Positions 15,961-50,952 of a stretch of DNA of 64,000 nt are shown one piece after another. This stretch comes from Podarcis melisellensis. Taxonomy: Eukaryota. Numbering within the stretch: the first letter of the stretch is position 1; the number at the start of each line of letters is the position of its first letter. The stretch lies in the NCBI GenBank assembly GCA_964234715.1, contig OZ174286.1; one strand, 5' to 3'. A program made the position numbers and the translations under genes. Under the pieces are notes generated by a model. The model saw only the letters and a list, made by a program, of their open reading frames with translations. It was not told where the DNA came from and ran no database searches.

Positions 15961-18900
15961 GGGTGGGGACGCACATATAGCTGAAATTTCTGGGTCCCTT
16001 GCACATAGGACTCTGTCTGTTGTCTCTGCTTACTTTAGTTCTCATAGTCCCATTGCCCTTCCTCTCATCAAGTTAAGTCTGCGATATTAGTTGCATTTTC
16101 TTAGAGCCCTGTTGAAGGCTGAGAGTCCTCTTGGGAGGACAGTCTTAACGTGGATGTTTTGTGGCACATTAGATCTGTCAAACTTCATCTGCATTCATGC
16201 TCATGTGTCATTGTGTAAAGATGTTTTGTTCCTGCTGAATTTTTGACCTCACAGACCTGTGTGAGGAGAGGAACCCACACAACTGTCTGTACCACATTAA
16301 GGCTTGTGTTCCCTGGTGGAATTGGCTGCTGTTCAGAGACCTTGAGTTGACTTTCACATCCAAGGGGCTGGTTGGAACTTGTATGAATACATTTTTTAAA
16401 AAATAAAAATAATTATTCACATTTATGCTGTTTGGAAAGTCCTTGCAATATTTGGAAGCCTGCCCCCATCGTCTAAAAGCTTGGTCAGCTAACAATTAAA
16501 TACATAAAATATCTGCTAAAATCAAAGCAAAGCAAAATCAAGTGGGTTTTTAGGTGCCCTTCGAGAGGAAGGAAGTGCCACAATTTGTTTGTAGGGCCTC
16601 TGGTGTACTTTGGTCATCCAAGACTTGGTGATACCTCTAAGAAATCCTCACAAATCAGGGACCTTAGATTCTGACTTGATAATAAAACTTTATAGCCTCC
16701 AAGTGGAACTGAACAATGTAAGCTACTTAAGGAGGGCAGAAAAGCAATATGGTTTCTTGACATTTCAGTGTGTGTTCACCAAGGCTGCCCCCACCATTAC
16801 CCAGAATAGCATTTCTGCACACAGTGGCAGGAGAGGGAGAGAGAAAGAATGAGAATTGCTGCCGCTTTTTCAGTGTAGCCTTTCAGGAAGATAGGAAGCA
16901 ACCATCTAGCTCAGCATTATCTTCTCTGATGGGTAGTAGCTCTCCAGACAAGAGCATTTCCCAGCCCCCTACCCTGAGACAGAAAAATCTCTGTGTGTGA
17001 AATAAGTCCCTACTCTTGCCATTTCATTAAAAAATATGGTTGTGTGGCATAATAGACCTCAGCCACCTTTTGACGTTAGACGAAATATCAATAACTTCCA
17101 AGAGATCTTTTAGTTGCATGAGATAATCACTAGATGGCTGTATGCTGGAATATCCCTGTGTTGTGCTTCTTTGCAAAAAATCGCAGGAAAATCTTCATTT
17201 CAGCTACTTAATCCTGACACTTGAGAAGGGAGTGGATTTGAGTCTTAAGCACATGATGAGCTAGGAAGCTTAAAATGATCTCTTTGCCCCCTTCCCTTTA
17301 ATATCCCTCTTGTGTATTTCACTCTCAGCAAATCACTCTAAAGAATAGTACCTTATGTTGATATCAGCGCTGGGCAAAGGCCAGCCATTGCAGAATCTTC
17401 CTGTGACCATTCAGTGGGACATATTGCCGGAGATGAGATTATTGGGCAGTAACATGCTTAATTCACATGTGATTTTAATGCCTCTCTTGAGCTATTGGGA
17501 CACATCAAAATACAGTTAGACTTGTATTATAAATACATGCCTTTCCTAGGGCTGCCAGCTTTAAAACAACAAATTCACAGGAAGCTGCACTGACCAGCAA
17601 CAGTTTTCCAGGGTTGCAAATTCCTCTCTTTGACAAAGCCTACCTGGATCTGCCAGGGATGGAACACAGGACCTTTTGCATGCAAAATCAGGTGTTCCTG
17701 TTTTTTGTCAAATAAGGTTAGCATCGGAGCAACCTTTAAGGGGATAGAAGGCTTTTGGAATGTTGTTATCTATGGATATCCACTGTATTTTTTGACCATG
17801 TGAACTGTGGAAATATAGGTCAGAGGGACAAGTTCACAAATTCCATATATGCAGCATTTTTTAAAAAATACCCATGGTTAAAACATTCAGCTCCAAACCA
17901 CTATTTAAACTTCCCATGTTCAAAGTCCGTTTGGAAGCTAGATGTGAAAAGCTATTCACAGTGGAAGTGCTATCAATGCATTCCTGCCACCATTTTCCCT
18001 TTTGAACAGTTGTGCCTAGTCCCTTTAGAACTCTTGAATTTAAGGAGTATTCTGGAGGTTTTGAGAGATCATCTCCTGAACTACCAAACTGGAGTGAGGG
18101 TGTTTGGGGTGCATACGGAATGCATATTTGGGCAAAGGGCATCAGTTACTTTTCATGAGTCTGTGAAGACTAGAATAAGAACTTACTCCTTTAAATGAGA
18201 CACCTGGATAATCTACTCTCCCCTCACTGGAAAAACCATGCTTCCATCCCTTTTGGTTGGTTTGGTTAAAAAAAAAGAAAGGTTTTAACCCTACTTAACA
18301 TTGAAGTCTCTTCATTTGAAAGGAGTTCATCGAATTAAAAATGAATCCTGCTGTTAGGTGAATTGTGTCCTACCAATTTTTACAACCATACTTTTAACAC
18401 CTTGCGTCTTTAAATTTTGAAGTTCTTCTGAGACTGATGTCTGTTCCCAAGAACTTAGTTACTCATCTTTCCTCCCCCTCAACTGTGAACCAAACACCGT
18501 TTTGCTCATATGCTGTTCAGAATTCTCAGCAGTTTCAATATTTTGCTATTAGTCTGCCAATAGTAGGACAAGTGTTTAGCATAATGGATATGATTACCAG
18601 CATCGATCCTTCTGTAGAAACCAAACTGCTTGGCTGTCTCTGCTTTCTGTTTAAACTATCACTGCAGTATATTCTGATTACAGGTATCATATTTGCCTTT
18701 CCTTTATGGCAAATGAGGATTTATTTATTTTTCATTTCTATTCCCTAGTCAAAATAAAGGCGAGCTATTTAATTGCTAGAATATAAATAGTCATTCAGCT
18801 AACGGTTTCAAGTGGTAATATTATGAATCTCCCGGTCACCATTGTCCAATCTGTTTTAGCATTCATGTGCCTAATTTCTGTTTGTAATCTGATTACTGCC

Positions 18901-19098
18901 TTGAGCTGCTCCACTTTGCAGCCTATTGCTATGCATTTACTGTACTCCCTGGGACGCGATAGCCTGACAGCTCCAGTCCTGAGCTATGAAAAAATCTCTA
19001 CACAATATTGCTAAGACGGGCCTAGGGCTGTGGCTGACTGAGAATTAGCTGCTATTGTAGTTTTCTCCTTTTGCCTGGTCCCTTTGTTTTCTGCAACC

Positions 19099-19159
19099 AT
19101 GTTTCGAAATCCTTGGATATCCAGCTATTTGCGAAATGTCAGCTACTCCGAAGACCAAG
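19099..19159 (+). CDS. SVIL: Putative alternative first coding exon A (MFRNPWISSYLRNVSYSEDQ, phase 1)
   Basis: gcaaccATG has A at -3 and is the first ATG after an in-frame TGA at 19039. Donor AAG|GTAAGA at 19160. In frame with exons B-C-D and the canonical Met. Confidence 0.65.
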
Positions 19160-20989
19160 GTAAGAGTGCCAAGTCCATCGGAAATAATGCAACTGAATGT
19201 AATTTATTGTAATCTAAATTCAAACAGTTTTCTTTGAGCTTTTTTCCCTTCCCCTCCCTCCCGCCATGAAAAAAATATTTACCACTTTGGTAATCAGCAT
19301 TTAGTTTGGCATCTAGTCTTATTGTTTTCCCAAAGGACGCTCTTTTAAAAAATCCGATTAGATGAATCTTCTAATTAGCTTAGCTAGCAGTTGAATTAAG
19401 GCCTTGTAGATATACTGAGTAACCATTAATGGTAATATCTTTTGAGCATTTTTTTAAAAAGGTGATGTCTGCATTGTGCATATGTTAAGAAGAGGCTTGC
19501 TTGTTTGATTTTTTAAAATTGTTTTGATCGGTAGTGCAGTGATCAGTTTAAACTTTGAAGCAATAAATCATTTTATTGCCTTCAGAAAATAAACAAATAA
19601 AACAGTGCATGCATATATTAATTGCTTTCCAGTGAAGAGTTTTATTAATACAATTGCCATAATCCTGTGACCGCCCAGGGAACAAAGTATTGATACGTTT
19701 GCAGTGACTCCTTAGTATTCTGGAGAGAATAGTGGACATGATTGTCAGACTAACCACCAAAATATCAGCCAACCCTCTTGAGAGAGCCTAGAAAACAGAA
19801 ATGCTTTGACGTCTGTTAAACATCTTTATGTAATTTAAGGGCTGAATGCATGCTATTTGAGCAATAGGTTTCTTTCCCCCCACCCCTTGAAACTTTTAAC
19901 ACATAATGTCAAAAACATGTACCGTCCACTAAGTGAAACTTCATTTACGGAACTTTTTGAGGCAAGGTATCGTAGCATTTTGCAATTTGCTGTAGATTGA
20001 AAAGGTACCCTCCCCGCCCCCATCACATTCACACAAACAGTGTACCAATATTTTAAGCTGCTCTGTGCATTGCAGTTATTCAAAATGTGGGTTTGGTGCT
20101 TCATGGTTAATGGAGAGTCAAATCATAATATCACGCAGGCTTTTTCTTCTTTGGCTAGCTTCCCTTCTTCCTCCACATCCCTTAAGTTGAAAGCTTCTCC
20201 TGTTTTGGCTGGGAATGGAGAGGAATTTTCTCTGTGGCCTTCTGGAGGCTTTCATGGTTGAGAGAGGTATCCATGCCAAAAGCTGTGTTGGGTTATACAC
20301 CATTTAGAATTGCTATAAATTTTTACGCATGCCTGGCTTTAATTTAACCAAACTCATATACTGTTAGAGAATTATTAACAGCTGCTCTTTCCAATAATAC
20401 AAATCTATTATTCGTAAAGGTCGTTCTTTTTCATTAAGACGCAGAGTTTCAAACAGGGTAATAATGGTAAATCCCTGCTAATGCTTGCCTTGACTATGGT
20501 GTGTCTTTCTTTGTTTTCGAGTTGCTTTTTAGGGCAAGCTTTATCCCTATTGTTACTTTGGGGAACAAAATAAACTGGATATCATCATAGGACAAAGCAG
20601 ATGCCAAGTTGGAAAACGATGTTTGCTGACAAGACTTCAGAAACACTAAATTGTTACTGTCTATTCCAGTTAGCTTAAAACAATATTTTATTGACTACTT
20701 AATTTTTTCCAAACTTTCTACCCTTCTCTTTCAAAAGCCAAGTCATTTCAGTGTGGAGGAGGGAGAGAAGATGGGAGAGCATACTGTTACTTAGCTTTAT
20801 TTAAAACTTATTCTAGACCATGTTTCCATTTGAACAAACAAATTGATTGTATCCAAGGCTGCCAATGAATGGAACATTACTTGCTCAGGCAACAGGACTT
20901 ACTCTTGCTTTCCTTGGTGTGCATCCCATACCCTTTTCTCTCCCCTGCGCAACCTCAAATTCTGTTCCAAAAACTTAGGGGATCCAAAG

Positions 20990-22030
20990 AGTTGGGGGCC
21001 GACAGGAGGAGAGGAAGGGGAAGTCCCATTGCGTGGCAAGGTCCCAAGCCCTCCCGAGATGTTGGTACAAAGACACATGAAACCAGTATTTTAGGTTAAT
21101 GGGCTAAAAAGCCCACAACTTTATTGGTTACAGAATGTGAGTGGTATTGGCTTAGGCCAGGCATAGGCAAACTTGGCCCTCCAGATGTTTTGGGACCACA
21201 ACTCCCATCATCCCTGACCACTGGTCCTGTTAGCTAGGGGTGATGGGAGTTGTAGTCCCAAAACATCTGGAGGGCCGAGTTTGCCTATGCCTGGCTTAGG
21301 CATTGGAAACGAACTGACTCTATCTGACTCCTGCCCATCTGCAGGAAGTCTCGGAAGGGTTAATCACCAATTGGGGGAGCCCTCCTGCTGCGCATCAACT
21401 AGGAACTCCCCCAGGGTCGCCGCTCAGGGTCGTGCCATAGCCCTAGCTCCCATCTGGACTTCAGACAGAGACCACACCCATTGGATTCCTTTAATGGAAT
21501 ACCCTTGAATTAGGAGGTGTAGGTGATGGCCACTACCTCCCCTCACCTCCAACCGAATACTCCAATGCCTAACCGCCTAACCTTACAAAGTTGTGACGAT
21601 TTCCTACGAGGCAGGTGAAAAACCAAATGGCTGGTGCCAATTTGCCAAGTGAAAAAAAATCCTACCAGCCCCTTCAACAGGCAACCAACAGGCGAGGTCG
21701 ATAGCAAGGTGAAGAGATAAAGAGCCTAAACTTAGGGAGGGAGGGAGAACTGAGCAAGGAGGAAGTAGAAAAGGGGCAAGTCCTCTACCATGGGCAGTTT
21801 AAATAGCCCAAGCCACGCCCCCTGACCGACCGGATTGGTCGGCCCAAGGGATGACACGGCTGAGGGCTCCCAATGGCGCAGGGGCTATACCGCCCCGAGC
21901 GCAAGGTTCGGGCTTGTGACCAGCCCACAACGTCATCTCCCCAGGAACCGGAGATGGCTTTGTGTGAGTGGAAATCTGTTGGATACAGCCCAAAGCCATT
22001 TGATTTACTTCCTGCGAGGGCCATGGATGC
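20990..22030 (-). mobile_element. LTR-like (solo LTR or DIRS/Ngaro-type terminal repeat) element; boundaries approximate
   Basis: GC/CpG-rich island in an AT-rich intron. On the minus strand, in order: CCAAT (21834-38), GC box (21812-21), TATTTAAA (21798-805), then AATAAA (21120-25). Confidence 0.55.
21158..21293. mobile_element. hAT-type MITE, 136 bp, near-perfect palindrome
   Basis: TIR caggcataggcaaact/agtttgcctatgcctg; exact 8-bp TSD gcttaggc at 21150-57 and 21294-301. Confidence 0.92.
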
Positions 22031-22942
22031 AGGCAGTAGTTGCAAAGTAGCCTCATCTAGGGTTGCCATACTTTTCTTTCCAGATTTACACTGTTTGAAA
22101 CATGGCAGCCCTGCCATTACCTTCCTTTATATCTTACTTTTCAAGAGTATCTCTGCATGGCATTGGGGAACTTAGATTCATTGATCTAATACATTCTGCA
22201 GCAGCTCCACTTGTTCCAGCTGTTCCACAAGGCATGATGGGGGAATGTTGGAGTCAATATATGAGCAGACTCCAAAGATGGTACTGTTACCAAAACCCTC
22301 TGCAATTTTCTTGCATGGGAGGAGGGGGAGTCCAGAACAGGTTCTCACCACAAATTTCCTGCATCTTACTTTTGTGCAGTGGTTCCTGCACTTCCCACTC
22401 AGGCTAATCCAATCTTTAAACAGTAGAAACAACTACTGTAATTGCACCATTATTTTGTAATGCAAATGTGAAGTATGAATGGTAAACCTGTTTTTAATGG
22501 GAACATGCCTTGTAAGTATGGATCAAACATCACCAAGATGTGTATATAGCTAAAAACCCTGTGTTTAATGGTTTCCATGTTTAATGCAGGAAGTACATGA
22601 CAGTAATGATGTGAGCAGCATGCTTACTCATTCATGGCAAGTGGCAGTTTGGTTCACCATGGTGTGGGCTACTGTGGAACTTATGCTAACTACAGTATAA
22701 TAAATTTACCCAAGGTGCCAACAGGAGAGCTACTGGCCCAGTCCTCTGTTCATAGTTCTAAGTCATAGTCAGTGTTCTGTTATTATTTTCTCTCCCCAGC
22801 ATTGTTTGCTTTCGCCATATGAACACTTAATAATTGATTTGTTTGGCTCAAAGTGCAAGGTTAGACTATTAAAGCACTGGTGTTTTTTCCCTCTCCCAAT
22901 ATACTTTCGCTGATGTGATATAATTTCCTTTCTTTTTTCCAG

Positions 22943-23009
22943 ATTTTGACAAAGAAAATTTGGTCAGGTATAAGACTCCAAGATTACTCCAAAGGAGGAG
23001 GACACTAAG
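22943..23009 (+). CDS. SVIL: Upstream exon B, 67 nt (DFDKENLVRYKTPRLLQRRRTL); coding or 5'UTR depending on the first exon used
   Basis: Strong acceptor ttcctttcttttttccag, donor AAG|GTAAAC, open frame phase 1 to 2. Confidence 0.75.
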
Positions 23010-23011
23010 GT

Positions 23012-23048
23012 AAACAAACAAACAAACAAACAAACAAACAAACAAACA
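23012..23048. repeat. (AAAC)n microsatellite fused to the exon B splice donor
   Basis: GTAAACAAACAAAC... seen directly. Confidence 0.95.
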
Positions 23049-23837
23049 AAACACTCTTAAGAGTTCTTAGGTGTAACTGACTAGTCTCTGGTGAGAACAA
23101 AGAACAACACTTGGCTTAATCTTCATCATTGTAGTATTTATATAGCAGAAAACAAAGAGTCCTTTGACACCTTGGACACTAGCAGGTATTTTGGGCTAGT
23201 TCATGCCTAGTAAACCCTGGTTTATAGTTTACTCTGGATATTGTTGAATTGCCTCTGTTTGCTCCACACTGCCTGGAGCCAGGAGGAACAAACTATCTGT
23301 GATTAGTGTTGTGTGTGAACCATCACTCATGATCAGTTTCTCTTCCATTAGCAGCAAGTCAAGAACAAACCTTGGCTTCTGCCTGTAGTTTCTTTGGAGA
23401 AAACAGAGTGCAAGTGTTGGCAAGGATATAATGTCAAGGCAAGGTTTGTGGTTTGTTGTTCCTGGCTCCAGGTCAGGCAGAGCAATTCAGCAGCAAGAAC
23501 TAGCATGCTGCTATTTCATGGTAAGCCATAAACCATGGCTTACTGGCTATGCAAACCAGCCCATAGTATTTTATGGGGCAGGTCCCACTCTGTCAGATGC
23601 TTGAAATGTTATTCTCAGCTGGCAGGGGGGGAAAACTAAGAGTGGAGCCAAAAGCTATGAAATGTAAGAGGAACAAGGAGGTCTGTGAGGTTTCTGTTCA
23701 AAGTTCAAATTGAAATGTCACAGTCCTCCTGTACTTGGTAATTCATCGTCTTGTGACACCACTGTTGACACCTCCTGTATATCTCTGTGTGTGTGTGTGC
23801 ACGCGTGCGCGTGTGGCTCACAACTGAAGGTAACATT

Positions 23838-23913
23838 TCATGCACCTAAAAGAAGGTTGCTAACCCATGAAAACATATGTCACAATAAATCTGTGCATCT
23901 TTAAGGTGCCACA
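23838..23913 (+). mobile_element. Degenerate Penelope-like 3' end fragment
   Basis: ...catgaaaacatatg...aataaatctgtgcatctttaaggtgccaca resembles reptile Penelope termini, recalled from memory. Confidence 0.45.
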
Positions 23914-23919
23914 AACAAA

Positions 23920-24300
23920 GCGGGTGGCGCTGTGGTCTAAACCACTGAGCCTCTTGGACTTGCTGATCAGAAGGTTGGCAGTTCGAATCCCCGTGACAGG
24001 GTGAGCTCCCATTGCTCTGTCCCAGCTCCTGCCAACCTAGCAGTTTGAAAGCGCACCAGTGCAAGTGGATAAATAGGTTACTGCTGCTGCAGGAAGGTAA
24101 ACGGCATTTCCATGCACTCTGGTTTCCATCAGGTTGTTCCATTGTGCCAGAAGCGGTTTAGTCATGCTGACCATGTGACCTGGAAAGCTGTCTGTGGACA
24201 AAGCTCCCTCAGCTTGAAAGTGAGATGAGTGCACAACCCCATACTCGCCTTTGACTGGACTTAACTGTCCAGGGGTCCTTTACTTTTTTTTTTACCTTTT
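23920..24300 (+). mobile_element. Sauria SINE, near full length
   Basis: Head gcgggtggcgctgtggtctaaaccactgag, B-box gttcgaatcc (23981-90), characteristic body cctgccaacctagcagtt.gaaagc, tail cctttac...ttaccttt. Confidence 0.9.
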
Positions 24301-26164
24301 ACCCCTCTGAACATACATACATTTGGAGATATCAGCAGTCACTGCACTAATTATCCATACAGATTCACCCTAGAAATTAAGAAAGTGGTTGTATAAACCA
24401 ATCTTTTAGTCTCTGTCCTAATAATAATAACAATAATAAAAGCTCCATATCATGCTTTTGGAATAGAGCAGGCTTGGGTCCTGAAGGAGCCTTCTTGAGC
24501 AATAAATGGAACTCCAGCCAAAAGCAGGAGAGGCAGGAAAGAAACCAAGTACCTATGTTTTGCTGTTACTGCTGTCATGACATGTATGTACAGTACATGC
24601 AAATACTGGCTGGTCCTCCCTTGGTTGCAATAAAAGCTTCTGCTCTGCCCAGGCCCACTTAGCTGCCTTATGCCAAGTCACACCACAGGTGTGGCTCTTG
24701 GGAATCTCAGATCGTGGTCCCATCTCCCAGCCCTTTCAATTGGATATGCCAGGGACTGAACCTGAAACCTCATGCTTGCAAATTCCATGTTCTGCTGCTG
24801 AGTTATGTCTCCCATCTACTGAGCTGTGGTCCCTCTACATAAAGAGCAATAGAGGAACTGAAATAAAGAGAGCTGATGTATGTATGTTAGTCTGTATTTT
24901 AAAAGGAATTGTTATGTACGTTTGTTTTTGCTGCCTTTTCCATGAAGGAGTTCAAGGTTATGACTTCTTTGGGTGTGCAGTATAATGAGCCATAATGACA
25001 AAATGCCGTTTTCCTTGGGGTTTGAGTTAATGGTATTGCTGATTGTTGGGAATGGTAATTAGGTTAATAGGACAGATATTCAAAGACTGTACATCACGGA
25101 AGCAGAGAGCAGTCCTTCTTATCCTTTTCATCTTAAAACATGCCCTCTTTGCCCAAAATTATTCTCAGCCTGTGTAACAGGAGCTCAGTCAGACAGCTTA
25201 GCAGTTTGTTGAACATTACCTAGTTTTAAAACAGTAAATAATTGGAAGATTAGAAAGCCTAGTTCTTTGGGCTGTGCTTTTATGAATATCTTTTAAATCT
25301 CAAAGAACCATGGAAACATATTCAGTTGCAGAAAAAGCTATATTGACAGAAAAAATATAAATAGATCTTTAAAGGTAATACACCTAAAAACAAATGAGAA
25401 AACAGAGATGTTTCAGAATTGGAGGAGTATCACTTTGGTAGGCTACAGCACATATTCTAAGCACCTGGTGTGCAGGAGCAGATATGAGCTCTTGCAGGCA
25501 TCAATAGCTTTGAAGGCAAGTGTGTGTGTGTTGTGCAAAAATAGCATGAAAAGATTCCTGTAAATGGCATGAGCTTGCAGCGCACCCAGGAGTTGCAGAT
25601 CAAAACCAAGAAAATATGGATAGATGCTGTATTTGTAATCTCTACGATTAGTGAATGACTAGAGAATTTCTGATTATGGAGGGCAATGGTCAGGGTAGGA
25701 GTCAAGACATAGACCAACCTTCCACAACCTGGTGCCCTCTAGATGTTTCTGAGCTACAACACTTACCATTGCTGAACACTGGGCATGCAACCTGGGGCCA
25801 TTGGATACTAACAGCATCTGGAGTGCACATCAGGGGAAGGCTGGTCCAGACTGAGAATAATAATAGTAATAAACTGCAGCCAGAAGAACAAAAGAGAGTT
25901 TGTGAGATTAATATATTTTCCACAGCACAGGCATGAACTCCCACACTAATAAACCAAGGACCAGAAGAACCAATGAGGATATGGCATAATATGTTGTATT
26001 GATCATCAAGGATGATAAGCCGATGCCATGGGCTGTCCAAGTACTTTTTAGCTAAGGCACTGATGCTTCCAGTAAGGGGGGGACTGCCTGTATGCCGTAG
26101 TATAACTTGATTAATAACAGAGTATTCCACACCTTTGTTAAACATAATGTTGTCGATGCTACAG

Positions 26165-26256
26165 TTTTCAGAAAGAGTTTTCATTTGAGGATAAAGAAGA
26201 GCTTGCAAACAGCACTAAGGATATCGATGCCAACCTTTTAGCAGTGCTGCCAAAAG
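26165..26256 (+). CDS. SVIL: Upstream exon C, 92 nt (SFQKEFSFEDKEELANSTKDIDANLLAVLPK)
   Basis: Acceptor ctacag at 26164 (a second AG lies at 26171) and donor AAG|GTAGGT. Phase 2 to 1 restores the frame into exon D. Confidence 0.72.
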
Positions 26257-26964
26257 GTAGGTACAGAATTGTGTTTTCTTGTATAGTGGCTTTTTAGAAC
26301 GTCGCTTTGAAAGATTGCCATAGACATGCTTCCTTTGTAAACAACCTTTTGCCCCATTTCTGAAAGAGCCATGCTGAAAGCAGAGGGTTTGTTCTGGGAT
26401 AATAGTTCTACTCCTTGCAAAATTCTGACATGCCAACAATGAACCTTCAACTTTTATCTTGGTGTGCGAAATCTCCCAGCAATGGTCATTCACCTCCCTC
26501 TTCCCTCAAAAAGGAACGGGGAACATGAAGTTCAGTACCATCCCCAGGTCTTGTAGGGTCCTGAGGCAAGATGCCCTTAGCGGGCCTCCCTCCTTGTTGT
26601 GGGCATTATGGCCTCCATACCTAACTGCCTTTACCTAGAATAAACTCTTATCATTCACACACTTGCCTAATGGAAGACTCCAAAGAAAAAACTGTTCATT
26701 TTAGACTGGACAGAGGACTGCAAGCACAGAGCAGCTGCACTAGGAGAGCTCTTGCAGAGGAGTAACTCCGGGTAATACTAAATGAGCTGCATACTGCAGA
26801 AGGCAGCGACCATTCCCCAAGGCTCTCTGTTTAAGTCTTCTGTTTAAGTCTCTTTTCTGACCCCATTGTCCTTGCCCCAGGGCTCATCCATTCTATCACA
26901 AAACTTCCCCACTCTCTCCAAGTCCCTTCCAATCCTATGTTATTTCCAATATCATCCCCATGCG

Positions 26965-27098
26965 CAGTGTTCTTCAACCTTGGGTCCACATGTTGTTGGT
27001 CTACAACTCCCACCATCCCTGACCATTGGCTAAGATAGCTGGAAATGATGGGAGTTGTAGTCAAACAACTTCTGGGGACCCAAGCTGGAAGAACACTG
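26965..27098. mobile_element. Palindromic hAT-like MITE; related decayed copies at about 25700-25835, 28135-28330, 52600-52705, 55260-55410, 56020-56150, 62465-62600 and 63590-63700
   Basis: TIR cagtgttctt...aagaacactg; internal tacaactccca/tgggagttgtagt inverted core. Confidence 0.75.
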
Positions 27099-29570
27099 CC
27101 CTAGCATCATGAAATAGTTCCAAAGTGGTGCACAGAGAAATCAGTACATTTGCTTACATGAAATTGATCTGGGAATTAGGTATTGTTTTTATTTTTAAAA
27201 TGGCGATGCAAAATTCTCGAAGTCTTGATTTGGACACGCCTGTGTCTTCCCCTTGTGATAAAAACTGCAAAAGGCTTTCAATTTTGCTCTTAAAATAGAC
27301 TGTGCATTACTGTCACATGGCTAGTATCTAACTGGATCCTTTATCCTGCCTGAGAGAGTTCTTGCCATAATGTGGGACATTTGTTAGTGTGATAGGGAAG
27401 ACTGTTCCTTCCTGAAATTTAAAGCTGTTTGACACACAGAAAATATAATTGGAGAGACAAAGATATTTCTTCCTTTGCTTGTTTTTAAATTGCCATAGGA
27501 GTATATCTTAAGACACTCTTGGCAGATGCATATTTAACCTGCTAAAATGTAACTGGTGCCTTGTGTAAAAACACCCCCCCAACCATATATAGCTTTCAAA
27601 ACTAAGATTTATAAACTAAGATTTATAATCTTTTGCAAAATAACCCAGTTTTAAGTGCCCTGTGCAACATTTAAAAATAGATTCTAAAGTCTGTGATTCC
27701 TCTTATGGGAGAAGGGTTGTCACTTACATGATCTGTATAAAATCCTTGGGACTAAGTGACTTAAAGCAAAGCTGGTTGCAAATGCATGTCGGATCACTCA
27801 TCTTTAAAATGCTACTTTCTCTCTTGTAAGTGTTCTGCACCTCTCAGCTGTGCTGAGATAACTTGTGCAGCCCAGCTGTATCCTCCAATGGTCAAAAGTT
27901 TATGCTGATGTTCAGTCTGGCCCAGCACGTCTGTGTGAAATTGTATACTTCTCAATGGGATTGTGAAAAGAGTGAGCATGCAGGTGTCTTGCACTGATGA
28001 TACATGCATTACAGGACGTATATGAAAAGCAAAATTTAACTGACCATTTCCCCCTGCCCCCAGGGATTTACTAGTATCTGGGGGAGGGATACTTTTAAAC
28101 CTAGGTGAATGTGAATTTTACTTCTATACAGCATATAGGATGGGGTGGAAGCGAACCTGTGGCCCTCCAGATATTGTTGGACACTTCAGCACCCGCCCCT
28201 CCCAGATTTGTGTCCCTTTTGTAGGAAATGTGTACTTTTTGTGCATTCTGCAATTTCCCGGTCAAAGGTCAGGGATTGTAGGGAGTGGTAGACCATCAAC
28301 ATCTGCATGGCCCCAGGTTCCCCCACTTCTGATCTAGAGGAACTTCATGTTAGCAGGGCTACCTGTCAGGTCACTTTAAAGGGGGGTGGGGACAAAGTTG
28401 CCTCAGGAGAGCCTCCAGTCATGTGTTAACCTATGTAATTGATATAACTGTCTGGAATCTCAAGTGTGGAAAAAGTGTGATGCTGCACAGGCTAGGTCTG
28501 TGCTATTTTTATCTCGGGTCTAGCTTGAGAAGGTGTTGGGGAGATACTCCACAAGCCCATAGCTTTCACTTAGGCCTGCAAAACAGCAGCACAACCCAGG
28601 ATGCTGCTGACACCTGAGGAAGACCATTGCATCAATTACAGAGTTGAGATTGCAGGGTTTTAACCTCTCAGCTGGCTATTAACCTGGGATACGGACCATC
28701 CAGCACTGCACTGTGGGAAAGGAGAGAATCCTATTTGGTTTCCTTCACCTTCCCTCCCCTGCAAGGCTTGAACGGGACTACGGTACAAATCTCCTGTTCC
28801 AAGCTGCCTGGGGGCCTGAACAGGAACATTTATTATGGAGTGTGGAGGCATTTTGCTGCAGGTCTCACTTGCAAATAAACTCTTCAGGGTTTTGCTTCAG
28901 CGAAGTGGTGACTTGCAGTTCATATGTTAACCACGGTGACGGTCCATTGATGGCAATAAAAAGAAGTTTATGCTCTTAGGCCTGCACCTAAATAAGAGTT
29001 GGCTATGCGTAGGTGTTATTTATGTGGTTTAGGTCCTCGGCTCTTAAACACGTACCTAAAAATTGTGGCCTGAAGGGAAATGACTGCATAACTCTCCAAA
29101 GGCCCCCTTAAAAACCTGTGCCGTAGTCAGCTTTAGAGTTGCCAAACATACAGTGCATTAGTGGTTCAAGCAGTAAAATTGTTCTGTCAATTAACCAGGG
29201 CTGGGGAGTGAAAAGTGAGTGAAAGCCATGCAGTTGGCTCCACTCATGACCCACAAGATTCCCCCTCCCCAAGCTCTGGTCTCAGTGTTCCTCCTGACTT
29301 GCCAGCTTCTGATTTTGCTCTGATCCTGTGGACTGCCTTCCGCAGCATTTTTCTCATCAGGATTTTGGATAGAGCCTGAATGAACATAGCTGTGCAAACC
29401 ATGGTGTCAAAAGCAGCTGCCACTTTGTATGTAAACTTCTGTTTCCTCTTGGGGTGTTGTTTGTTTTTATTTACACTGTAACCTAGAATACAGCTGCAAA
29501 CCACTCCATTAACAAAGTGCATAGTTTCAGATTTCTAATAAGTATTTTATGGGGTTTTGTTTTGCTTCAG

Positions 29571-29628
29571 TTTCCGAATTAAGAAAACTCTTTGAACCGA
29601 ACAGGCAGGATACCTTGGAAATGAAAAG
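29571..29628 (+). CDS. SVIL: Exon D containing the canonical start ATG 29621 (VSELRKLFEPNRQDTLE-MKR)
   Basis: Acceptor ttttgttttgcttcag, ATG AAA AG|GT, followed by a 96-nt intron. Confidence 0.92.
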
Positions 29629-29724: not shown

Positions 29725-29876
29725 GAAAGAAAGGATAGCTAGGCGTTTAGAGGGAATTGAAAATGACACTCAGCCCGTCCTTTTGCAAAACTGTCCAGGA
29801 TTGGTTACCCATCGTTTGCTAGAAGAAGATACACCAAGATATATGCGTGCAACAGATCCATATAGTCCTCACTTCA
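29725..29876 (+). CDS. SVIL: SVIL exon, 152 nt ([50 protein letters not shown])
   Basis: Near-identical to the supervillin N-terminus; cccag acceptor and GTAAGA donor. Confidence 0.97.
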
Positions 29877-31281: not shown

Positions 31282-31939
31282 GAAGATCAAATGAAGAAGA
31301 AACTTCAGATTCCTCAGTAGAGAATCAGCCTAGATCAAGATACCAAGCAGAATCCAGTGGAGGAAAAACAAAGCCACCTTCTTACAGCCCTTCAGTCATG
31401 GATTCCCAGGGACCCGAGTCCAAAGCAGAAAGGATAGCTAGGTACAAGGCGGAGAGACGGCGCCAGCTGGCTGAGAAATACGGACTTTCGATAGATTCGG
31501 ATGTGGACTCAGAATATTTATCCAAATACACCAGGGCAAGGAAAGATCAAGAAGTGGCTGAGAAGAGAGTACCAAAGAGTGAGAAAAATGAGGATGAAAG
31601 TAAAGATTATAGTTCCCTGTACTCAGTGAGAACAGAGACTAAGGAGATGAGGAATGCTTCTTTGGAGTCAAAGGAAAATTATGTGCTTGAGAGGGCAAGT
31701 TCTCCAGAAAGGGAAAAACTGCATTTGAATGAGGACAATGAGAGAGAAGCCCCAGAACCTAGTTGCAACAGACATGATCTACCCTCTGCATCAGAGAATT
31801 CCACATCCTTCTCATATATCGGCCATGACTCCTCCCTAAGTGAAGTGCCAAGTTCGCCAAAGCAAACTCGCAGGGTTTCCCTTTCTTCACCAAAGCAGCT
31901 AGCTTCACCAAGTCATTCCCTCAGCGACAGCAGATTAGG
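31282..31939 (+). CDS. SVIL: SVIL exon, 658 nt (RSNEEETSDSS...ESKAERIARYKAERRRQLAEKYG...SDSRLG)
   Basis: Contains ORF 31398-31943; ttatag acceptor, AGG|GTAAGT donor; phase 1 to 2. Confidence 0.96.
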
Positions 31940-32896
31940 GTAAGTGCGCTGTTCCTGTCGCTGTTTTGTAGAGTGTCAGCAACTGTTGGTATATATAGTA
32001 CCTGCTCTAAGGTCTTTGCATTGTCTTAATATTAGGTGACAATGGCAATAAGGGGAAAACTGGGTAGGAAGCAAGCGGTGTGAGTTAGTACAATGACACA
32101 TACAGTGCACTTCTAGTGTTGCAGGAATAAGAGCAGGATTGGATATAGGATTTTGGGAAGGGAAAATTAAGCAAGACAGATCTATGCACAGCATAGATTG
32201 TATGTTTGGAACAGCCTTTGAAAGAATGGTTGAAATCCAACGAGAAAACAGATGTTGTTGTACTGGTGTACAAACAGAGTTGCTAAAACTTTGAGGTCAG
32301 TGCAGAAATAGGGGACAGATTGAGGGAAATAATTCCGAAATCATTCTAGTCTTTAAAAAGGCAAATACCTTTACAAACAAACTTACCCATTTTGAGAGGA
32401 GGGAGAACAAATATTCTGCAGACCCTCCAGTTACCACGGATAAAACCCAATGTAAATTTCAGACAATCTACATATCAATTCGAAGTGAGTGAATGTGAAG
32501 GTTTCAGGTTGCATTTTTCTGTCAGCAAACAACATACCATCAAAAGCACATGATGCCCAAATAAGTACATGGACATCTCAAAAAAAAAAAAAATGACAGC
32601 CAAGTCCCCCTTTCTCCCTTCTCACTCACAGTAATATCAAGGGCAGCTAAACTGTGTTCTGGTGTTGCAGGTGTGTGTGTATCTCTGCCCCACGTAACTG
32701 GCTGCTTGTGGGGGTGTTTGGGATGTCTGAATGCAGGCACAACAACTCCTAGGAGCCAAAGAAGTCCGCCCCCCAATGTCTTTTTTTAGGGGCCCGAGCC
32801 CTCTCAATATTCAAGGAGCATTCAGAGAGATTATGGGACAGAGAACACAATAAAAACCCCACAGCTATCTGTCATGGCAAATATGTTGACTGATGG

Positions 32897-38693: not shown

Positions 38694-39551
38694 AGTAAAA
38701 GTTAGAGAGAAACTGGTGAAAGACGAAAGTGCCCGTTCAAGCCCTGAACTTCCAGCAGACACTATGACTCAAAGAAAGTTTCGCCCAGTGCCTGTTAATT
38801 TCGTGCCTCTTCAGTCAGAAACGTCTGCTTTCCATAGGGTTGCCAATCAGCCTCTTGGCTTCGCCTGCCAACCAACACATGGCTATGTTCAGCCTGCTGG
38901 AATCGCTCATATAGCTAAACAGGTGGCAGCCGAAGAACCAGAAAGCAGCTCCGTTCATAACCTTCCTGGGCCGGCAAATGTAGCGTTCATAACCAGATTC
39001 CCAGAAGATGCGAAGATGGATGATGTAAGAAGTGACTTGCCTCAGAATCATGGATCGTCATCGAAGCTCACTTACTCCAGTTTGGAGGCAGAGAAGGAAA
39101 GGCAGCCAACTTTGACTTCAGAGAATCGTAGGTTGAGCAGAGGAGATGAATTTGAGAAACTGGCAATTGGCCAGCCAAGGAACGTGATACCTGAGAAAGA
39201 GCTGGAGCGATGTATGCAATGGATGCCTGGACCTCAGGCGAAGACTCAGGAGAACGTTGAGAGGAGCGAAAGAGTTGTGTACCTACAGAGTGCTAAAGGG
39301 AAAGTTCAGGCTCGGGAAGAGACTCCAGTGAAGCATAAGCTCCTTACTCGCTCATTTTCTGATTATAGTGGTTCGCCTAAATTAGAAGTTTTTAAAAGTA
39401 AGGAGCATGTTGCAAAGAATGCAATGGAGTTTCAGAGCACTGAAGCCAAGATCCCCAATGGTGAGATTGCCATGGTTGACACAAAAGTCTCTGTTGCCCA
39501 ACTCCGTAATGCCTTTTTGGAAACTGCCAATGCCTGCAAGAAACCTGAACT
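38694..39551 (+). CDS. SVIL: SVIL cassette exon, 858 nt (VKVREKLVKDESARSSPEL...KVSVAQLRNAFLETANACKKPEL), archvillin-type insert
   Basis: Contains ORF 38716-39555; ttcttaaag acceptor, CT|GTAGGT donor; symmetric phase 2. Confidence 0.95.
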
Positions 39552-39966
39552 GTAGGTGACGTTTCTGAATATATATGTGTATATATTTTTTTAACTTGGT
39601 GTGACACTTGCACGTCCTTGGCATAAAATGGCACCCCAAACTCAACATCAGTTGCGTTCTGCAGCACTTCAAACACACGAGTCAATTCCCATCTAGTGTG
39701 TCTTGGAGGTGGAGTTGTCCTGAATTCTCTTGTTCGTTTGTGCTTCTGCTTGCTTAGTGCAAGTTCTGATGTTGGGGCAGCTGGAATGGAATGACTTTGT
39801 ACTTTTCTATGCATGGTTTTCCAGGAGCATGCAGAGTGATTGATAATGGACTGATTTGGTGGGATGCTTTATATTTGTCCTTCACCTCTCTTTCTCCCTT
39901 CCCTCTTTCCCCATCCTAATTCTTTGTTTCCTTTCTTTGCACTTTCTGATGTGGTTAAAAAAAAAG

Positions 39967-48404: not shown

Positions 48405-48978
48405 GTGCAAAGTGACAGTGGGAGAATTGCCCCTTTGTCCCCCACTATTGTAACGTCAGTGTCAACCATGGTGTCTGCATTGTCGCCGGTGTATAGTAAG
48501 GATCTGCATGTGAAGCCAGCAGAAGATGAGGTGGTGAATGAGATTGGGAAACCTGATTTCAGATACCACTCTCCAGCGGAAAACGCAGATACTTCATTAA
48601 AAAACATCCTGAAAACGGAATTGTGGCAGCCTTCGGTGGAATTGAGAGAGAGCAACTGGCAGTCGAGGGAGCCTGAAGAGACAGAGCCCAGGGGATTCGT
48701 AAAACGTGAAGAGAATGCTATGAGAAAGCGAAGCTCTTTTGAGGAAGAGCCACCGCTTCCTGTTCCTGATAAAACGGAGGACTACAACAAAGAGATGAAA
48801 TATGCATTCCCAAGAAAAAGCAGCATGGAATTGTTTAGCCCACAGCCTCTTTGTCAGCCTGCTGAACAAAAGGAATTCGCCAGCGACACTCTGAAGAATA
48901 AACGGGAAGTCAAAGGCCAGTCCTCTGAGGAAACGATGGAGTATGAAGGAATTGTGGCAAGATCAACCCTGCAGAGAG
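48405..48978 (+). CDS. SVIL: SVIL exon, 574 nt (VQSDSGRIAPLSPTIVTSVST...ARSTLQR)
   Basis: Contains ORF 48405-49013; ccacag acceptor, GAG|GTAAAT donor; phase 0 to 1. Confidence 0.94.
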
Positions 48979-50952
48979 GTAAATGCCTCAGTGTGGGCTG
49001 CCACCCCATTTAAAGAAATCTTAGCCTGTTTGTTGTTTTGAGTTCTTAAAAGCAATTAATTAAAAGGTTTGGATAGCATAAATGTGTATATGATTGAAGC
49101 AGTTATGAAGAGGGGGCGGGGACCATTGTTTATACAGGTGTCCCTAACAAGCTTTAGCTTAAGAGGCATTCTGTCCTCTGTGAGGAGGGAGGGGGGAATG
49201 CCTCATCTGTCGCTCGCTAAGGGTTGTGGGTTTGTTTTTGTAAATGCTTGTATTAAAAATAATTACCATGGGGTGGAAAACCACAGGTTGTTAGTTGTAG
49301 GAGATTTCAGCTTTCACATTGCGATCACTCTTGGGCCAGCTTCATAGCCTCCATGACACAGATGGGGCTGTCTCATATTGTCATGGTTGGAAGAGACACT
49401 GAAGTAACCCTGTTGTCATAGTCGGACCACTTCCTAGTGGTTGTTTATTTCAGCGAGAGAGAACTCTGCACTGCCCCCCTCTCCTGGGGTGAAAGACTGA
49501 TCAAGATGGTATACCCTGGTGGCTTATTGAATCCAATGGATTCCTGAATGCTTTTGCATATTTTCTGCGGTACAGAAAAGGCAATTCTGTTCAGACCACA
49601 ACCTCACTTTGGAACGGTGAGATGCACCAGGCCATTTTCCACAACCACATCTTGAGTGCCATTTTTAATGCTGCTGATTGGTGCCTTGGACAGTTGTGGG
49701 CAACGAAACAGACCACATGATGGCTGGAGCATATGTATTTATTATATATTTGCACCACTTGATTGTAAACAACGCACCCACACATAAACCATAAAGTGTG
49801 AAGATGATCATGTCTATTGTGTGGTGGTGAAGGCATACTTTTTTGCCCTTCATTGCAGTCTCAAATAACCACCCAACAGATGCTCTTTGTGGAAGCGGAT
49901 GTCTGACTTGGCACACGGGGTATTGTAGCCTTTGGAGGCCTGTTGTGACAGATTAGCAGTGGTAATTGAGTGTACAAAATCACTCATCTCCATGATGACT
50001 TGGACATCATTGTTGTGGCTTTTGTCGGATTATACAAGACAGAGACCAGAACTGTGGTGTGACATGTCTTTAAGATGCAAGAAAGGCAAGGGCTTTTGCC
50101 TGAGCATTCTCACTTGAGTCCTTTACCTGAGCTGGGGACGGCATAGTCTCTGGAAATGTGTTCCTTGGGAAACTTGAGAATTGCCTCTTTCTCCATCTTG
50201 GTCTTCCCCAGCACTGGCATTCAATGGAAGAAACACATTAGCATTGTATACTGCATCATTTAGGACCGATACACTAGCATGCTACATTGGGACTCAATGA
50301 AATCTCTTAGTATGAGTAGCCAGAAGTACCATTTCCCCCAAGCCACCTGGGCCTGTGTGTGCATGTGCGCTCACATGCACATGTGTATGATGTCAGATTT
50401 CTGGCATCTTGCAAACGATGCAAGAAACTCACCATCTATTTTCATTGCACTGGAGAGTTATGAGAACTCACAAGGACTCAAGGAAGCTGTCTTATAAAGA
50501 GTCAGACCATTGGTTCCTCAAGCTCAGTATTGTCTACACGGTCTGGCAGAACCTCTCCGGGATTTTAGACATGGATCTGTCCCAGCCCTATCCAAAGTTG
50601 ACGGGGACTGAATATTGGACCTTTTGCATGAAAAGCAGGTTCTCTTCTGCTGAGCCTGCAGCCCTTCCAACTCCCCAAACTTCCAAGTCTACAGTTCTGT
50701 GATTCTACGATTCCTTTCTTCTGAATCACTGACTCTTGGTTAGTTCTTCTAGCCACAGAATGCTAGTGACACTGTAATTTTGTAAAGCATGAGAAAAATC
50801 CACCATTGTGGTGGAAAGCACCTAATTTGTAACCTGGGCTTGTATAATTCATTATATGAAACAAAGAAGTTACCTGTCAGTTTGAGTGATGTGTTTTGCA
50901 GGTTTTTGCTTTTTTGCAATTAAGCACTAATTCTGAGCTCCCCACCCCCCAG

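Follow-up and report, generated by a model that had tools for sequence, protein, structure and literature searches.

A putative alternative first exon and a predicted 90-residue N-terminal extension of supervillin in the lizard Podarcis melisellensis

The window analyzed here is a stretch of 64,000 nucleotides from the lizard Podarcis melisellensis (contig OZ174286.1 of the NCBI GenBank assembly GCA_964234715.1). It contains the 5' part of the supervillin gene (SVIL), in which the canonical N-terminus is divided between a short ATG-bearing exon and the exon that follows it. Upstream of the textbook start methionine lie three further exons, termed here A, B, and C; the short exon with the canonical ATG is termed exon D. 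Translated exon by exon, these upstream sequences hold 90 stop-free codons from an ATG in exon A to the canonical MKRK. The best explanation overall, considered highly probable, is that exon A serves the gene as an alternative first exon and that the 90 residues are translated as an extension of the protein. The features on which the argument rests are the following:

18779..18788, + strand: TATA-like motif GAATATAAAT, the putative core promoter of exon A
18806..19098, + strand: conserved non-coding block of 293 nucleotides, the putative 5' untranslated region (5' UTR) and/or promoter of exon A
19099..19159, + strand: coding part of exon A, 61 nucleotides (20 codons plus 1 nucleotide, phase 1 end), beginning MFRNPWISSYL, with the donor GTAAGAGT
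22943..23009, + strand: exon B, 67 nucleotides, entered in phase 1 and left in phase 2, with the terminal basic stretch RRRTL
26165..26256, + strand: exon C, 92 nucleotides, 30 full codons
29571..29628, + strand: exon D, 58 nucleotides, with the 16 codons that complete the extension (SELRKLFE...) and the canonical ATG at 29621 (MKR)
29725..29876, + strand: next supervillin coding exon, used as the known-coding control

The acceptors of exons A-D are all AG and the donors all GT, in contexts resembling AAG/GTAAG. Read by hand, the codons split at the three junctions are GAT, AGT, and GTT (phases 1, 2, 1), and the serine codon that straddles the B/C junction produces the sequence RRRTLSF. The claimed frame is the sole stop-free frame in each of exons B, C, and D, and an in-frame TGA lies at 19039, 20 codons 5' of the exon A ATG. 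In the predicted A-B-C-D isoform the textbook methionine becomes residue 91. Because exons B and C together comprise 159 nucleotides, splicing exon A directly to exon D would yield a shorter extension of 37 residues. The first-pass annotation of this DNA had proposed the exon coordinates and lengths, the phases, and the stop-free peptide of 90 residues, all of which matched when the sequence was re-read, and its arithmetic for the 37-residue variant is correct.

Part of the evidence for the interpretation comes from a comparison of the lizard window with four bird SVIL loci taken from single-product gene models. In all four loci the exon lengths (61, 67, 92, 58, and 152 nucleotides) and the splice sites are identical to those of the lizard, and the context of the exon A ATG (GCAACCATG) and the exon A donor are also identical in the lizard and the four birds. 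Because public gene models favor the longest open frame, a substitution test at the DNA level was added, in which the variable sites among the lizard and the four birds were counted at each codon position and assigned a binomial p value. Over exons A-D, third positions account for 38 of the 58 variable sites (10, 10, and 38 at positions 1, 2, and 3; p = 4.5e-7). In exon C, every one of the 15 variable sites is a third position (0, 0, and 15; p = 8e-8). The counts are 2, 1, and 7 in exon A and 2, 3, and 7 in exon D; exon B, the least constrained of the exons and one that stays in frame in all of the models, has 6, 6, and 9, and the known-coding next exon has 3, 1, and 29. Such a pattern is what purifying selection on a translated sequence characteristically leaves, and on this evidence a 5' UTR that is open by chance is excluded for practical purposes.

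Conservation of the predicted peptide extends well beyond lizards and birds. In an alignment of 21 vertebrate sequences, all length differences are in frame, and the invariant elements include the first methionine, the Ser-Phe pair where exons B and C meet, the motif LPKV(S/A)EL(R/K)K.FE, which straddles the C/D junction, and the canonical methionine. Among the sauropsid models compared, exon C differs only by scattered single-residue changes. On the preferred explanation, the extension is translated and has been under purifying selection at the protein level since before the split between bony fish and tetrapods. Judged from the sequence comparisons, the upstream exons of sauropsids should be annotated as coding sequence, not as UTR.

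The extension is also present in public gene models. A 50-residue peptide of the next exon, searched against a representative library of 1.84 billion proteins, matches supervillin models at up to 98% identity. In many of these matches the peptide begins at about residue 88-95, compared with residue 4 in canonical supervillin, and the N-termini of these longer representatives are homologous to exons A-D. Species names were obtained from cluster look-ups and from two word searches seeded with stored orthologues. Models that start with MFRNPWISSYL and carry exactly 90 residues before MKRK occur in turtles (Chelonia, Caretta, Chrysemys, Trachemys, Dermochelys, and Pelodiscus), and models with this start and this length are also known from many birds (among them Gallus gallus X19, the ostrich, the emu, owls, and passerines), from three crocodilians (Alligator, Gavialis, and Crocodylus), and from six squamates. 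Nearly all sauropsid models of the exon A type have 90 residues before MKRK. Diverged versions are found in fish (Polyodon, Acipenser, Lampris, Pygocentrus, Sinocyclocheilus, Anableps, Mugilogobius, and Trichomycterus), where paddlefish, sturgeon, and several teleost orders share the pattern M[FY][RQ]N.WI... followed by ...LPKVSELRK.FE..., and in a frog model the C-D part is present in frame. Both PF00626 and PF02209 (gelsolin repeats and villin headpiece) are present in full-length orthologous models; the C-terminus lies outside the 64-kb window. The isoform with 90 additional residues is therefore already known at the level of annotation, as automated RefSeq, Ensembl, or UniProt models in dozens of species. 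No model with the exact exon A peptide of the window was present in the protein collection searched, and so the isoform of Podarcis melisellensis itself may be unannotated.

Two of the models depart from the usual layout. In an Acipenser sinensis model (P0001), exon B is joined to the exon after D, and exons C and D (150 nucleotides, in frame) are skipped. This skipping removes the canonical ATG, so that, if it is real, translation could start only at the upstream ATG. A model from Limosa lapponica (P0267; L004 5143-5220) has an insert of 21 residues between the parts encoded by exons B and C, derived from the sequence just 3' of exon B; the insert occurs in no other species and is probably a modeling artifact or a retained piece of intron.

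The sequence immediately upstream of the exon A ATG is more strongly conserved than the exon itself. Identity between the lizard and the birds is 90-92% over the 293-nucleotide block at 18806-19098, compared with 84% in the coding sequence of exon A and 45-57% in the flanks. The block has a sharp start about 25 nucleotides past the TATA-like motif, whose core GAATATAA (18779-18786) is invariant in the alignment of the lizard and the four birds, and it continues without a break into the coding sequence. It is read as non-coding because of a 1-nucleotide insertion or deletion between lizard and birds and because of the in-frame TGA noted above. A search of Rfam with the block returned no match, and its predicted RNA folding is not unusual (z = -0.63). 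Three upstream ATGs, at 18865, 18931, and 18986, lie in the block and are all conserved in birds. Read most simply, exon A would extend over about 18.81-19.159 kb and include a strongly constrained leader; the promoter would then be positioned at about 18.78 kb and the transcription start site near 18.81 kb. A rather doubtful further possibility is that the 293-nucleotide leader is a translational control element.

A different account of the block is that it acts on transcription as an enhancer or promoter and is not itself a transcribed leader, with a start site close to the exon A ATG that would make the upstream ATGs irrelevant. The presence of a CCAAT motif, the high conservation without a signal of coding or of RNA structure, and the upstream ATGs, whose conservation would be unusual for an efficiently translated leader, all point in this direction. 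Against it, the block runs as a first exon would, with its sharp boundary downstream of the conserved TATA-like motif and its unbroken passage into the coding sequence. This account is a serious possibility, if one of less than even probability. It bears on the leader alone and not on the extension.

The promoter had earlier been placed near 18.8-19.1 kb on the basis of a TATAAAT motif and a CArG site, CCATTAATGG, and both motifs are found where they had been reported (18782-18788 and 19423-19432, respectively). The first of these two elements withstood the comparison with birds, in which the TATA-like motif is conserved and is followed by the conserved block at a spacing that fits a promoter, but the CArG site is not conserved. 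The pattern CC[AT]6GG occurs seven times in the window, which is about the chance level, and is absent from the first 5.2 kb of the four bird loci. CArG and MEF2 motifs are either not conserved or absent when the lizard and bird loci are compared. A muscle promoter driven by SRF through the CArG site at 19423 was considered and rejected, because the site is not conserved in birds and the motif is at chance frequency in the window.

Exon A is not the only first exon that leads into exon B. Turtles and birds have no fewer than three further first coding exons that join exon B in phase 1 and leave the reading frame of exons B-D unchanged. The first-pass annotation had suggested that exons B-D serve as UTR in transcripts from other first exons; this suggestion failed in turtles and birds, where those first exons carry in-frame ATGs and exons B-D are consequently coding there too. 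The other first exons were not detectable on the + strand of the window, nor in the 2 kb that precede exon A in the four birds.

These exons bear on the most direct challenge to a role for exon A, which accepts that exons B-D are coding and holds that exon A is unused or very minor in this lizard, where translation would begin either at the canonical methionine or in a different first exon beyond the limits of the window. A look-up of sequencing runs found no RNA run for the species, at least three alternatives to exon A exist in turtles and birds, and the upstream ATGs lie within the conserved leader. The exon A peptide, the ATG context, the donor, and the upstream block are nevertheless conserved between lizard and birds, three models of the close relative Anolis carolinensis begin with exon A, and the other first exons were not found in the window. 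Taken together, these observations make an unused or very minor exon A unlikely.

The least tenable alternative is that exons A-D are ordinary 5' UTR exons, open by chance or for RNA-level reasons, and that the extended proteins are artifacts of choosing the longest open reading frame: a mammalian literature with a 5' leader and an MKRK start, and the fact that all of the extended proteins found are predictions, would fit this, but it is made very improbable by the excess of third-position changes and the exclusively third-position variation of exon C, by amino acid conservation from teleosts to sauropsids with length changes in frame only, and by exons B, C, and D each being open only in the phase-compatible frame.

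Several observations weigh against translation of the full extension from exon A. Exon B on its own has no significant excess of third-position changes among the lizard and the four birds. The preference of automated models for the longest open frame means that species in which the frame is broken would not show in the lists of models. Four sequencing runs compared with 18300-24299 are DNA-like: their contigs cross the introns and contain no 19159>22943 joint. Five runs provisionally taken for RNA proved to be DNA of low coverage. The canonical methionine is invariant and is probably also used as a start in other transcripts. If the leader is transcribed, the three conserved upstream ATGs precede that of exon A and could limit its use. 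With these points counted, the preferred explanation remains that exon A, as an alternative first exon, supplies a start codon of its own and is joined through exons B and C to exon D, which places 90 residues ahead of the textbook start, in an isoform that would be used in Podarcis melisellensis. The earlier interpretation was thus largely upheld, in that the upstream exons have the lengths, frame, and third-position excess of coding sequence in birds as well (with the all-third-position pattern in exon C), an upstream ATG opens a longer isoform, and the automated X-isoform models that it had expected to contain the extension were found in turtles, birds, crocodilians, and squamates; its CArG site and its UTR role for exons B-D were not.

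The remaining features of the window are of a more general kind. Very high-copy intronic repeats occupy 21100-21700 and 23900-24300; in related genomes their contig depth adds up to millions and repeat joints are numerous, and they are probably transposable elements. At 21-22 kb the GC content rises to 0.53, in coincidence with the first of the two. Three bases past the exon B donor begins a perfect (AAAC)n microsatellite of 9.8 copies (23012-23050). Farther downstream, the long open frames on the + strand at 31398-31943, 38716-39555, and 48405-49013 contain further N-terminal coding exons of supervillin/archvillin.

The supervillin N-terminus has been described as intrinsically disordered, and canonical residues 1-170 bind the heavy chain of myosin II as well as long MLCK, with residues 1-10 implicated in MLCK binding (PMC3842989). 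As in the remaining N-terminus, disorder is predicted for most of the extension: an AlphaFold2 model of the N-terminal 150 residues is of low confidence, with a pLDDT (predicted local distance difference test score) of 61, and shows mostly disorder with short helices only, and a Pfam search of the Anolis model over its first 450 residues gave no match. The serine at the B/C junction follows a basic stretch and forms a site of the basophilic-kinase type, basic-x-x-Ser (RRRTLSF in the lizard). Because the residues that bind myosin II and MLCK adjoin the extension, its most likely role would be that of an isoform-specific regulatory or docking segment, with a possible effect on myosin II or MLCK binding.

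In the literature on mammalian SVIL, the gene is described with 35 coding exons, an MKRK start, and a "muscle-specific 5' leader" in archvillin complementary DNAs (PMC6192639, PMC7447519), the leader being attributed to Oh et al. 2003 as cited in PMC7447519. A short-query search found homologues of exons B-D in frame with MKRK in a model from the mole Talpa occidentalis (P0301) and in several Logan contigs. These start at other ATGs, none of them of the exon A type, and none of the mammalian models found has an exon A type start. In the hedgehog Erinaceus europaeus (L005 9950-10008), the exon D homologue has an open reading frame that leads without a shift into the canonical methionine (AELRRIFEP...), and homologues of exons B and C were not found within 10 kb upstream of the start.

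A broader and rather doubtful proposal is that vertebrate supervillin had the extension, or its B-D part at the least, as its ancestral N-terminus and that translation of it is widespread, including in mammals, with LPKV(S/A)EL(R/K)K.FE acting as a binding or regulatory site that alters the adjacent MLCK and myosin II contacts. Were this true, translation from upstream starts would pass through the muscle 5' leader that is called non-coding in mammals, and functional work confined to constructs that start at MKRK would have missed one class of isoforms. The published functional work on supervillin and archvillin that was found uses only proteins beginning at the canonical methionine, and no description of an N-terminal extension was encountered in the literature searched. 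The 90 residues directly before the MLCK/myosin II site thus define an isoform class that is known only from automated models and uncharacterized in that literature. It is otherwise an ordinary alternative-first-exon isoform.

The closest known counterparts are the Anolis carolinensis models X28, X29, and X31, which have the same first coding exon and layout and match the window at 86 of the 90 residues, the differences being S15R, D19E, N65S, and Q84P (window residue first). Models of Chelonia mydas (X8, X10, X12, and X20), Gallus gallus (X19), and Alligator mississippiensis (X3) resemble the window in the first exon, in the four-exon layout, and in the length of 90 residues. In contrast, the other sauropsid isoforms (e.g., those of the MILTMDA type, a longer bird version, and single-species variants in Natator and Mauremys), all of which splice into exon B, differ from the exon A type in the first exon and presumably in the promoter. 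Mammalian supervillin and archvillin (SV1 and SV2) are products of the same gene and share the canonical methionine and the downstream N-terminus with the lizard; in the literature on these proteins, however, MKRK is given as the start of the product and the exons before it are described as non-coding, whereas the corresponding lizard exons read as coding.

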